From the NCBI RefSeq assembly GCF_006345805.1, contig NW_021835960.1, forward strand, positions 115,358 to 179,357: a stretch of DNA of 64,000 bases, given 5' to 3'. The notes under the pieces are model-generated. The model was not told the origin of the DNA, searched no databases, and was given only the letters and a program-made list of their open reading frames with translations. Each line of letters opens with the position of its first letter. Position 1 is the first letter of the stretch. The DNA is from Octopus sinensis (Eukaryota). Shown here in pieces: positions 19,401 through 40,400 of this stretch. The position numbers and the translations under genes were made by a program.

Positions 19401-22400
19401 ACATATATATATATATTATATATATATATATATATATATATATATATATATATATATATATACATACATACACATATATATATATATTATATATATATAT
19501 ATAATGTAATATTAATCTTTCTATGGATTTGTTTACATATTAATCACTTATTAATCTTTTTTTTTTCTTTTTCTTGTTTCAGCTTTTAAAAAATGTCAGC
19601 AATTTTATTACTAAATTAGAGCATACAATTTTGAATTTTGACAGAAAAATATGGATATTCTATTTCTGATATTTTCAAAAATTCTTCTAATTTATTTATT
19701 TATTTTTTAAGAACTGCCGTACTTTAGCTTATGTAAACCAAAACATTTAAATGATTCTGTAAAATTCCACTGCAGGTGGTTGAAAACCAAATCAAAATTT
19801 GCTCGTTTCAAATTGTGTTACCTGACTCAAAATAACACTCATCTCATTTGTATTCATATTTATATCATTTGTTGCCCATTTTTTGCATTTATTTCCAGGA
19901 TCCATCATGTTTGCAAGTTGGCTCTGGGGCTACATTGCTTAAAAAATTTAATTCCATGCCTAATACATTAAGGAGGTTTGCTAGTCGAAGTACTTTGTTC
20001 AATATGAGTACAATAGATTACTCAGCAGAGGTAGGTACTGGAAATGGAGGCAACTTGCATGATATCCTCAATTAGAATTACGTTCTGAGAAGCCTGCCTC
20101 TTCTAATATCTTTCATCTGCCAAGCGAATGGTAGGGAATCTCAATTTGAAATATTAACTGCTTACTGTTAATGGATTGTAGGTCAAAGCCAAAATGTGAT
20201 TCTAACTGAATTTTTGAATAATTTTTAAATAAACTTTGCTTGAAGTTGATCGTGCAGAGGAAATTTTAAAAAAATAATAATAAATATAAACTTGACAAAA
20301 TATACCTTTGAATGTTTTGGTGTTATGTAACCAACAATATTAACTGCAAGTAACTACAAGCTGAGAATTAAACGAATGGACTTGTTAAAATCAATTAATA
20401 TCAATGATTTCGATGTGTTAACAGCTTTACTGGAGTTCTGTAACAAGTTGAACACTATAACTCTCTGTTGTTTCATTTCTTATCTGTTTCTTCTGTGTGA
20501 AGACAGATTGCTAATAGTAACAACCTTTTTAAAAAGCAGCTGCTCAGACTACATATAGTTGTGCTGTCTTTTACATAGCCTCTAGCTGCTTTGCCTGAAA
20601 TCCTGTTATGAGATGGACTCTCAATGAGGTTAAATTACTACTACTGATGTTATTTTCTGTTATTTGTTATTAGTGCTGCTAACTAACATCTTCATTCTTT
20701 ATTTTTCTCTTGGGATTATTTTTTTTTTTTTAGTTACTTTTCAAAACTTTTTTGAAATACAAACATTAACATGTGAGTCTTTAAATAATTAAGAAATAAG
20801 ATTATCAGCAGACAGGTATATTTCAAAACTGGAAGAATATTTTAGCAAAAAGCCCTTTAGCTACATCTGATACGACTCTAACAAAGCATTGTAACCAGGC
20901 AGATCTGGTTGCAGCTCTTGATAGTATCCATGGTTGCAGCTCTTGGTTGCAGCTCTTGATAGTATCCATGTTAAACTCCTGCTGCTACTTGACCCAGTAA
21001 GGTTCACTGCAACCATTATAAGGGTGTTATATGATATGAATAGGACATCTAATATGAGAGAAACCCATGAGGTATGAAGTTGGTATTTCTTGTAGAAATA
21101 TATATATATATAGAGAGAGCAGCACACCTGCTTCTTCCCTCATTCTTGATCACTCTCTCTCCCTCTCCTCTTGCTTTTCCCTATGGCTGGTTATTCTAAC
21201 CTTTCGTCATCCGACACAAGATTACCTCCTCCAATGCCCCTGCCGCTATAGCAAAACACCTGTTTCTGCTTCCCTGTACTTTCTGTCAGACTCTTATCTT
21301 TCATCATTTGATACAAGATCCCCTCCTCAAATGCCCCTGCCCCTCTCAAAATTCCTTGTCTTGCAAGTTACTTGGTGACCCTGCCAGTGCTGGTACCTCA
21401 TAAAAAGCATCCAGTCCACACTGTTAAGTGCTTGGCATTTGGAAGGGCCTCCAGCTGTAAAAGCCATGCCAAAACTGATCTTGCCTGTGCTGGTGCCACG
21501 TAAAAATCATTCAGTCTTCTCTGCAGAGTGGTTGGTGTTAGAAGGACATCCAGCTGTAAAAGCCATGCCAAAACAGACACAGTGGCCTGGCATAGTCTTC
21601 TATCAGGTTGACTCCTGTCAAACTGTCCAACCCATACCTGCACAGTAGATGGATATTAAATGATGATGATGATGGGTAATTCTTCACTGTTTGCTTCACT
21701 GAATGGTAATATTATCTGGAGTGTATATTCGCAATAATTATAACAGTAGAGAATGTGGAAACTGGTACATCCTCAAAATATATTTCCTTTTATTTTACAA
21801 TGTCATACAGCATTTTGAGGATGTACCAGTCTCCATATTTTCTATCATTATAATTATTGCTGATATACACTCCAGATAATATAACGATTCAGTGAAGCAA
21901 ATATGGAATTACCCATTGGAAGAATTTACAGCGTGACAACTCATAATAGTCATAGATGTTTAATACTAATCAGTGCAGTTAGCCGTAATCTGGAACATGA
22001 CAGAGAGCTACCACAGTATCCGCTCAGATAATATATCCCTCTAAACTCACACAAATGTATGCATAGTTTTTTATACCTTGTGGTATTTGTTCTGCTTGAG
22101 TTACACAAAAGCTCCCATGTCACACATGCTGTCATAAATACAGTGAATGTATGTTAGAAAACTGTAACCAATACTGCTATTGTTCACATATTGTGATAGA
22201 AATATAAATAAATAACCTTAGCCATCATTGCTTGGGCTTGTAAACAATCAATCAAAACTATACTAGTGCCATTTGTATGTCCAACATTCTGGATAGGAAA
22301 ACGTGAGATTGAAAACAGTTTATTTATTTATTTATTCGATGAGTCACTACTGTTTAATCTTTATTGTAGCCATACAGTGCTAAAATTTAGAATTTCACAT

Positions 22401-37400: not shown

Positions 37401-40400
37401 CAAAATGTGATTGATGCAACAACTTCATTCATAACTTGGAAGTATTTCAAAGTTGTTACAAAATTTACTGTAGCTGAAAGCTCTTGTTCAGAGCTTCCAC
37501 TCAACCATGAAATGATGGGCGTATATGTATACAGTCACATACATGCAGACATACACACATATCGTAGTAAATGTATGTATAGGTGTATATGTGTATACAC
37601 TCTCTTACTCCCCAGATACACATATAAATGAAGATGTAGACATACTATTATCAGGGATACGGTTAGATTGAATAATTGGTGTCTGTGGAGAGAACAATAA
37701 AATAGCTAGGTTTAGGTGATGGATATAAAGATAATCTTAACCATTTGATAAATAGGTATTGATAATATAAATACCAGAGTAATGGAGTCAATATGATTTA
37801 AGGTTGTATAACTACTGCCCAATGACTGAAAATAGTAAAATAACAAAAACTGAGTGGTAGAAAGAGCTGAACAATGTACTAAGAGTGTTTCAGTCATCTA
37901 TGTTCCTCCCAATAATGGTTGTGTCTCATATTAATTACAGAATTCATGCGGTACTGTTCCAGCCAGAGAATACCTTCTCTATTTAGGGTGTTCAATATTT
38001 CAGGCCAAATTCCTCCCTTTTCAGTGGCCTTGCCACATTTGGGCACTTTAATTACCTATATGACTTCAGCCTCTGTGAAGTTAGCCTTTGTCCCTAGATG
38101 CACCTCATGTTTACCAGATTTTATTGTGGCCATATTTACTTAGAAGTAATTATTCTTCTGGGCAGTTCTGAGGTTGTTGGGGCTTACACCTTTAGCCAGT
38201 TGTAAAGAAGATGTATTTGAGATTCTCAGCCATAGGCTTTTGTTTCTTGAAGCCTAGAAATATCAGTATTACTCACTTAAAATCGGTTTGTTTACATCCC
38301 CATAAATTAGAGGTTCAGCAAAAGAGACTGATAGAGTAAGTGCCAGACTTAAGAAAAGAAGTTCTGGGGTTGATTTATTCAATTGACCCTTCAAGGCATT
38401 GCCTCAGCATGGCCGCAGTCCCATGTCTGAAACAAGTAAATGATAAAAGAGTTGCTTGTCATTCTCTCCATCAAAAATGCGATGAATGAGAGATTGACCA
38501 ATTGGCAAGCTTTAACTAACAGCGGTGTTGTTTACTTAGGATAAAAAAAAGGAGAAAAACCATGTGAAGTAATGTCATTTCATTTTTTCCCTTCTCAAAA
38601 TAAAGGACTTTGGTTTTAGTCTAAAGAAAGCAATACTTTAAGGATGTTATAATGTAGTGAATTAAGTGAGAAACCATTGAAGCATTAAGTACTTTTTTAA
38701 AAGAAAACAGTATTATGGAGATTGTAGATTGACTTGTCTCCTTTACTGCTCTTAATTTATTGATTCTAAAGGTATGAATGGAAGAGGTTTTGGTGCCACT
38801 GATATTCTTTGCAAATTCATAAGTCCTTCGGATTTTTATTAAAAGTAGTTAACAGCTAACATTTCAATAGTTAACTTAGAGTTTAATCTTTGCTTTATCC
38901 AAAAAGCAATTTTTAGAGCCTCCCTACCAACATACATTACTCTTTCTGTCAGAGGTTTTCACAAAGCTGTAAAAAGCTAATTAACCTGGTAAAATCATTG
39001 GAATTCATAAACAATTTTGAATTCAATGGGAAAATATTTTTTTATTTATTTGTGTGAATGGGGAAGAGAGAGAGCGAGAGAGAGAGAGAGAGAGAGAAAG
39101 AAGGGTGTGAATGGATGTGACTATCTAATGACAAGACTAATGTCTTCATACTAATCTAACTTTGAAGAAGTAAAGAATTTATGTAGAGGTACACGTTGGC
39201 ACTACACACCAAACATAACATGAATAACTGTCATTTGGATGTAAAATAGCATAAACATTAATAGCTCTTCCAATCAAACTTCCTTCATATATCTGGACAA
39301 CACAATTCCCTCTTGTTCCTCCCTTTGCCTTTGTTCCTTGGCTTTCCTCTTTTTCGCTTCTCTTCCTATTTTCCCTTTTCTTTTTCCTTTCCTATGGTTC
39401 TTCCCTACCTACCTGCCTCCCTCCTTCCCTCCCTTCTTATTGTCCCTTCTTCCCTCGTTTCTGCTCCTCTACTTTAAACTGTATTTCCTACTATTTTCAA
39501 GCTACATGGTTTAAGTATGCATGAAGACAATGATCTGAGGCTTGTTTTTCTTGTCTAGGACAGCTCCTCTTCAGTAGCATCCCTCTCTTCTTATCTGAGA
39601 AGGTCACACGTCAATCTTTCCAAGAACACCAACAGCAGTTGGTTGAAAACATTGCATACTACTACCGGCCGAGGTCTGGCTGAGAGAAACAAGTGGGAGT
39701 GTTACGAGGAATCAAGTGTGCGGAAAATAAGCCAGGATTTGGGCAATTTTAATGAGGTGAGATATGAGGAAGAGGCTTTGAGATAAAGAAAGATGGTTCA
39801 TAAGAGATGGTGTCAAAGAACTGTTTTCTATTGTTTGTAACATTTCTGTTGTCTTTTATTCTATGAATGTCACCTAGACGCTTTGATTCTCTTTTCTATA
39901 TTTCCATTCTGTTTTTTTTCTTTTTCTTTATCTATTCTTTCTTTCAACATCATTATGGATGCTACCACTAAACATTCTTAGTGAATTTCCATTTATAATT
40001 CTTTCTTTATTTTTTAGAAACATTCTTTAAAATATTCAACTTGACTTTATTTTCTTTGGAATGATTTTTCTAAGCACTTCCTTTTCTCCCCTTCCCCTCT
40101 CTATCTTTTTCACTTTCTCTCTCTTTTTCATCAATTTAGAATTTGATGCCTTTTGTGTTTTATTTCTCAAATTGTTAATTAGTGAGGGATTTTTTTTTAA
40201 TATCACTGTTTGATTTATATATTTATTCTTTTAAATTTTTTTTGTTCTTCTTTGAAAAAGGATTTTCTCCCTTTAACATAGATTTTTTTTTTTTGCATCC
40301 TTAGCACTACACTTTCCCCCTATTGTTTCATAAGATCCAAGACAATTCAGCTTCTCTGCATCTTCCACTTTGCTAATTCTCATTAAAATTTTTTAAAAGA

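Follow-up and report, generated by a model that had tools for sequence, protein, structure and literature searches.

We analysed a 64,000-nucleotide stretch of DNA from Octopus sinensis (contig NW_021835960.1, positions 115,358 to 179,357, forward strand), referred to here as the window. By its sequence, the + strand carries the larger part of a FER tyrosine-kinase gene of cephalopod (octopod-like) type, running from about residue 128 as far as the stop codon. Three small exons, A, B and C, lie between the last exon of the FX coiled coil and the first exon of the SH2 domain (Table 1), and would encode a tether between the two halves of the kinase. We think it probable that these are separate tether exons, A and C being used in the same messenger RNA (mRNA) and B being either an octopod addition or a regulated cassette. 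This reading draws on the anatomy of the exons in the window, on cuttlefish orthologues of A and C that occur together in one mRNA, on the conservation of B in a related octopod, and on outgroups in which a single exon occupies the same position.

All three exons are open, with a pyrimidine tract and YAG ahead, an Asp first codon and a GAG/gtRag end (slashes mark splice junctions). Each length is a multiple of three with phase 0 on both sides, so that all eight combinations of A, B and C stay in frame between neighbours that are also phase 0; with canonical splice sites at every boundary, skipping any of them would keep the frame. These eight combinations had been put forward in a preliminary description of the window, whose coordinates, frames, splice signals and quoted peptides for A, B and C also held when the sequence was read again. 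Its spacings from EPPP to SH2, 14 residues with none of the exons and 192 with all three, stand if one counts from LEDEEWFHG; measured to the W of WFHG they become 19 and 197.

The three exons are more than a chance find. A crude splice filter asked for YAG, a polypyrimidine tract of at least 0.7, a donor matching at least 7/9 and 40 or more open codons in phase 0-0. Within positions 17864-42545 (24.7 kb) the + strand gave three matches, namely A, B and C, and the - strand one; in the window as a whole there were seven matches on the + strand (three being variants of a known SH2 exon and one apparently due to chance) and one on the - strand. The sole other + strand match, 49957-50109, encodes a peptide similar to the products of open reading frames (ORFs) that recur in the window, such as 10517-10819 and 7004-7270 on the - strand, and is probably a transposon-derived segment that passed the filter by chance. 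GC content rises by 9-12 points from flank to exon, as in proven exons (exon/flanks: A 0.37/0.29, B 0.37/0.27, C 0.46/0.34). BLAST found each of A, B and C, taken with 150-nt flanks, only once in the window; they are therefore not copies of a repeat. Rfam and tRNA scans returned no match, and a bacterial promoter scan, irrelevant to this DNA, stayed at chance level. We conclude that A, B and C are genuine, or very probably genuine, coding exons of the FER tether.

Table 1. Exons and conserved intronic segments around the FER tether (positions in the window)
Feature	Start	End	Strand	Description
FX (coiled-coil) exon	15729	15869	+	Phase 2 to 2; 43% identity to P0065 residues 311-356; long helix in the predicted structure, pLDDT 83-93
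Last FX exon	17707	17863	+	Ends phase 0 at gtaagt; 49% identity to P0065 residues 358-410
Linker exon A	19899	20030	+	132 nt, 44 aa, phase 0-0; ttccag/GAT...GAG/gtaggt
Conserved intronic flank upstream of B	26806	26905	+	97/100 identical to related-octopod contig L001
Linker exon B	26906	27109	+	204 nt, 68 aa, phase 0-0; gttcag/GAT...GAG/gtgaga
Conserved intronic flank downstream of B	27110	27169	+	56/60 identical to L001 (93%)
3' splice-site region of C	39529	39558	+	About 24/30 identical to cuttlefish, including ggcttgtttt..ttgtctag
Linker exon C	39559	39756	+	198 nt, 66 aa, phase 0-0; gtctag/GAC...GAG/gtgaga
First SH2 exon	42546	42743	+	Phase 0-0; starts cag/ACT GCA; Pfam SH2 E=7e-14

The use of A and C can be followed in cuttlefish. 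P0065 is an 893-residue full-length FER encoded by transcript contig L004 (2966 nt), which can be placed, one exon after another, on locus L003 of the Acanthosepion pharaonis genome at 97-100% identity. The exons run FX-A-C-SH2: the linker reads ...EGDPPPAVPNLEF, then the A orthologue (44 residues, spliced directly after ...NLEF), then DGTSLATPPSYVRRKRRGNLFKNSSISMGMLHVSSVFGASDKNSWEGYMEPGSRKLDIDFSSFSE, then the start of SH2. Because the orthologues of A and C are joined in one cuttlefish mRNA, A and C are real exons that are used together. The exons of a mutually exclusive cluster never occur together, and the adjacency of A and C in L004 thereby disposes of the suggestion that these two exclude one another. 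Exon A is identical to its orthologue at 38 of 44 residues (86%; non-synonymous divergence (dN) 0.087, synonymous divergence (dS) 0.88, dN/dS about 0.1), which is about the level of the SH2 domain and compares with 43-49% for the neighbouring FX exons; we regard it as a genuine exon under strong conservation in cephalopods, with an origin before the octopus-cuttlefish split. The C orthologue (L003:9920-10114, 195 nt, phase 0-0) shares 25 of 64 residues with exon C (z=16 by local and 12 by global alignment against shuffles). Its acceptor, ggcttgttttcattgtctag/GAT, nearly matches ggcttgtttttcttgtctag/GAC in the window, giving C a conserved intronic flank of its own (about 24 of 30 positions, octopus versus cuttlefish), and the remaining intron cannot be aligned. 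We therefore take C to be a genuine, fast-evolving exon that, like A, predates the octopus-cuttlefish split, and not the lineage-specific element it was first supposed to be.

The annotation of Acanthosepion pharaonis splits FER into two genes at the linker, CAE1317406.1 (P0064) and CAE1317407.1 (P0075); the P0064 model follows exon A as far as DPSCLQ and then continues into junk, and the P0075 model has its start within exon C and passes the donor of that exon into the intron. In the window, long microsatellites of TA/CA type occupy 18967-19509, directly upstream of exon A. Two hexamers of Rbfox type, TGCATG, stand at 20056-20061 (+ strand), 26 nt downstream of exon A, and at 39518-39523 (+ strand), 41 nt upstream of exon C. 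The hexamer occurs 26 times in the 64 kb, which makes two occurrences so close (within 50 nt) to a set of three exons mildly unusual. It was not seen in the vicinity of cuttlefish exon C, nor in the related-octopod contig that covers B, and we treat these hexamers as leads only.

Another cuttlefish transcript, L006, encodes P0001 (383 residues), which falls in the same 90% cluster as P0065. The transcript begins with an alternative first exon that lies within the A-to-C intron (L003:521-648, 100% match) and is joined directly to the SH2 exon, so that C, included in L004, is bypassed. We read L006/P0001 as a FerT-like short SH2-kinase isoform from an internal promoter and not as a product of cassette skipping. 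Mammalian FerT and isoform C of Drosophila FER are likewise short SH2-kinase forms from an internal promoter, and Patella P0005 is similar; such isoforms reflect alternative promoter use, unlike the cassette choice proposed for the linker exons. No counterpart of the cuttlefish alternative first exon was found in the window.

Exon A had been likened to a motif of the vertebrate linker. The motif is there: dog FER (P0090), with 61 residues between EPPP and WYHG, has ERLSKFESIRHSIAG. Its likeness to exon A, through vertebrate RLSKFESIRHSI, is a real match of 4-5 residues that falls short of significance (z at most 1.4). A search of the Patella FX-to-linker intron for an A-like exon gave a best match at chance level. 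The AlphaFold2 (AF2) model places two short low-confidence helices in exon A (ATLLKKFN and NTLRRFASR), and an amphipathic-helix scan was marginal for A (p=0.026) and found nothing in B or C.

Exon B is conserved in a related octopod. An exhaustive protein search returned, beside the cuttlefish fragment P0064, only a 107-residue genomic ORF (P0063) on Logan contigs of about 978 nt (L001 and L002), which spans exon B and its intron flanks. B is identical to these contigs at 199 of 204 nt (97.5%), with the frame and both splice sites kept. The flanking intron shows the raised conservation looked for in a cassette, 97% at -100 to -1 and 93% at +1 to +60, and further out identity to L001 falls to 70-83% with indels. 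Cuttlefish mRNA L004 lacks B, and a search of the visible part of the cuttlefish A-to-C intron, 9.9 kb ahead of exon C, revealed no exon resembling B. B is probably an exon and a reasonable candidate for a cassette; this part of the preliminary description carries over for one exon of the three. Within B, positions 27030-27062 form a (CAAAAC)n-like microsatellite that encodes NQNQNQ and that the related octopod shares, apart from one synonymous change. A short interspersed repeat (26471-26600) lies about 300 nt upstream of B and also starts contig L001; further copies stand near 2175, 24952, 35526-35771, 43259 and 54001.

In other animals one exon fills this slot. The FX exon of Patella vulgata ends ENGDL/gtaagt and is followed by one 81-residue linker exon (cag/GAT ACC...TTG/gtaagt; DTSSTLSTSSQSKKKTFLNYFRKQSD) and the SH2 exon SLENLPARLQDDECFHG; Littorina saxatilis has one linker exon of 101 residues, and perch one of 32 (cag/GAT AAG...TCG/gtgaga; DKMKDRSSRFDTLRHLAGMIRSPKAMLGSSTS), which carries the vertebrate motif. 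All three linker exons are phase 0-0, and in Patella and Littorina the upstream FX exon ends in phase 0, a few residues after a PP(P/S) motif. The position is the same as that of the window exons, after the exon with the PPP motif and before an SH2 exon that starts 12-17 residues ahead of W/C-F/Y-HG. Like A and B, the perch and Patella exons begin with a GAT Asp codon, and like A, B and C the outgroup exon is polar and S-rich with a basic patch; the difference lies in number and size, one exon of 32-101 residues against exons of 44, 68 and 66 in the window. One symmetric exon in each of Patella, Littorina and perch implies that the ancestral state was a single exon, as had been proposed, and cephalopods have gained linker exons, two being present in the cuttlefish mRNA and three in the window. 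No cephalopod linker exon was significantly similar to the vertebrate exon, and similarity to the gastropod exon was weak and depended on the method. In Littorina saxatilis, L008:14641-23817 and 26259-35452 form a tandem duplicate block of 11.6 kb with two FX exons and the linker exon, which gives the 1159-residue RefSeq model P0159 an internal repeat, either as a real duplication or as an assembly artefact.

The gain of exons could have come about by copying. That A, B and C are tandem-duplicated paralogues of one ancestral exon, kept as duplicated or mutually exclusive cassettes, was the original suggestion, and we now consider it unlikely. The one-exon outgroups imply a gain, which it would supply, and all three exons share phase 0-0, a D start and a GAG/gt end; this D...E framing is partly a consequence of the phase-0 splice consensus, in which AG/G gives a first codon GNN and AG/GT a last codon NAG, and the first SH2 exon also ends GAG/gt. 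B and C are alike in length (68 and 66 residues) and have in common with the gastropod exon an S-rich start, a basic amino-terminal half with N-[ILY]-[FS]-[KR] (N[IL][FS]K[SN] in B and C) and an acidic carboxy-terminal half with Tyr. A shuffle test on global (collinear) alignments ties B to C (z=2.85, p=0.007) and similarly to cuttlefish C (z=2.88), Patella (z=2.78) and Littorina (z=3.28), with p from 0.003 to 0.008 for the four; since some 50 pairwise comparisons were run, p of about 0.005 is borderline, and the link between B and C is suggestive at most. The other methods lend duplication no robust support. Searches by blastn and tblastn with the exons and 150-nt flanks found no similarity among A, B and C, and local alignment against composition-preserving shuffles gave z=-1.3 for A-B, -0.8 for A-C and +0.6 for B-C (p=0.28 for the last). 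Comparison of B with C by hhalign was non-significant (P=0.074), as were those with a gastropod/bivalve linker alignment (B 0.27, C 0.13, A 0.66). A hidden Markov model (HMM) built from C plus gastropods scored B above shuffles (p=0.024), a result that did not persist with gastropods alone (p=0.97) or C alone (p=0.063). Exon A, by every method, matched neither B, nor C, nor the vertebrate linker, so that of the claimed paralogy of the three exons only a weak B-C connection survives; and the co-inclusion of A and C in one mRNA refutes exclusivity for that pair. Aligning the whole FX-linker-SH2 region with MAFFT sets the front of the gastropod exon on A and its SYEQ on SSY/PSY of C, with B as an insertion, a layout that a split by intron gain plus a new exon fits equally well. 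As the methods disagree, duplication, division of the ancestral exon by intron gain together with a new exon, and de novo exonisation are all compatible with the data. As in the mutually exclusive clusters of tandem-duplicated exons in Dscam and tropomyosin, several exons of the same phase stand here in a row, and B and C are of similar size. The differences are that no homology among the three exons is detectable, that one mRNA includes both A and C, and that lengths in multiples of three leave co-inclusion unpenalised. A bolder version, that B and C are ancient duplicates of the mollusc linker exon and that B is a regulated (for example, neural) octopod cassette retuning the control of the SH2-kinase unit by F-BAR/FX, strikes us as distinctly improbable.

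Two further readings concern exon B and its use. All three exons may be constitutive in octopods, giving a fixed tether of 197 residues with B as a lineage-specific constitutive exon and no diversity of isoforms; we hold this to be possible, if clearly less probable than the reading we favour. The splice signals of A, B and C are equally good, the related octopod conserves B together with its two splice sites, and gastropod linkers are also long (81 and 101 residues) within a single exon. Close intronic conservation is more typical of regulated exons, and that hugging B (97% and 93%), like the cuttlefish mRNA without B, points the other way, neither being decisive. Alternatively, B could be a conserved non-coding element, a regulator of splicing or transcription that is open and flanked by AG and GT by chance. 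Its conservation is equal in the flanks, it contains the microsatellite-like (CAAAAC)n, and its substitutions show no synonymous excess; yet an open frame of 68 codons in the exact phase needed is unlikely to arise by chance in an AT-rich intron, YAG and GAG/gtgaga are both conserved, GC content is at the exon level, Rfam gives no match, and B is one of three coding-strand matches to the filter, of which the other two are proven exons. We judge the non-coding explanation to be quite unlikely. Some points nevertheless weigh against taking the three as tether exons with B an octopod addition or cassette. B occurs in no transcript, which also favours a non-coding B, and no octopod transcript was obtained; the five differences between B and the related octopod, 3 non-synonymous and 2 synonymous, have no power to reveal coding constraint; and a B-like exon may possibly lie further upstream in the cuttlefish A-to-C intron. 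The disorder of the tether is likewise a soft point: AF2 gives the FX helices a pLDDT (predicted local distance difference test score) of 83-93 and B and C one of 27-30 with no secondary structure, from an alignment of only 5 rows, where low pLDDT is weak evidence of disorder.

The gene itself is readily placed in the FER/FES family. With full-length P0065 as the tblastn query, F-BAR/FX exons at 4307-17863 align with its residues 128-410, the first 127 or so residues of FER lying outside the window, and SH2 exons at 42546-42743 and 46974-47150 are followed by kinase exons to about 61720. SH2 and then tyrosine kinase appear in the family order, the exons from 42546 to 61720 sharing 88% identity with cephalopod FER P0001 and 64-72% with annotated gastropod and insect FER; Pfam recognizes SH2 in the corresponding exons (E=7e-14). 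At the amino-terminal side, the F-BAR (FCH) and FX coiled-coil regions are indicated by alignment to P0065 and by two long helices that AF2 predicts for the FX exons. At 46974-46979 the acceptor of the second SH2 exon is a tandem NAGNAG (ctttag/gag/GGT); splicing to 46974 fits the length of the cuttlefish protein, and splicing to 46977 would lose one Glu.

Protein databases yielded no octopod FER. A query of FX+A+B+C+SH2 in a word-indexed search matched only SH2 parts, an SH2-kinase query returned nothing above 88% identity, and a query with the amino-terminal half gave no match, missing P0064 although this is in the collection. Cluster representatives can be shorter than their members (383 against 893 residues here), and the full-length cuttlefish FER was seen only through the listing of cluster members. 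Exact look-up found no record of P0064 or of the window ORF around B, and no mention of run accession SRR11869390 was found in the papers searched.

In the protein, A, B and C would form a flexible connection from the lipid-binding F-BAR/FX unit to the SH2-kinase unit: S, T, N, Q, G and P make up 42-54% of each, and no Pfam family matched the 178 linker residues. The FX region of Fes/Fer binds phosphatidic acid (review, PMC4021885). Exon A probably contains a short conserved motif, linear or helical, for binding or phosphorylation: L-x-[RK]-x-x-S ([RK][RK]FASRS), in the style of basophilic kinase sites. In human FER, R417, R425 and H426, within RLSKFESIRH, are lipid-binding residues, to which the basic patch of A may correspond. 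Exon C would be a fast-evolving disordered spacer that, to judge from cuttlefish, accompanies A in the normal full-length mRNA. Exon B would be an extra disordered exon that octopods maintain under constraint, as they do some 100 nt of the intron ahead of it and 60 nt behind; it is most likely either an octopod-lineage addition or a regulated cassette whose alternative use we infer. B and C could supply length, basic patches and Tyr sites in an acidic context that would be open to phosphorylation and SH2 binding. Skipping of exons would shorten the tether between EPPP and WFHG from 197 residues to as few as 19, and would remove the Tyr sites IDYSAE, NYEEQ, EEYNGE and CYEES along with the basic patches. 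Small symmetric neuronal cassettes are familiar from the linkers of other non-receptor tyrosine kinases, in boxes 6, 7 and 28 around Tyr397 of FAK and in Src N1/N2. Optional in-frame exons in a flexible segment beside a regulatory module would alter autoregulation and leave the folded domains intact, and B would act likewise if it is alternative; alternative use is documented for those cassettes, whereas B is much longer, of low complexity and a candidate only.

These observations are ordinary gene-structure detail of a known kinase and leave the view of FER kinases unchanged. Their main value is for the correct annotation of cephalopod FER, cuttlefish gene models breaking at these very exons. 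They also provide a small, clean case of exon gain in a disordered tether, within a slot of the gene that is fixed from molluscs to vertebrates. Exon A, conserved like SH2 and far above the adjacent FX exons, is the piece most worth a functional test, and B, if it is tissue-regulated, would offer a handle on how the length and content of the tether affect FER autoregulation.

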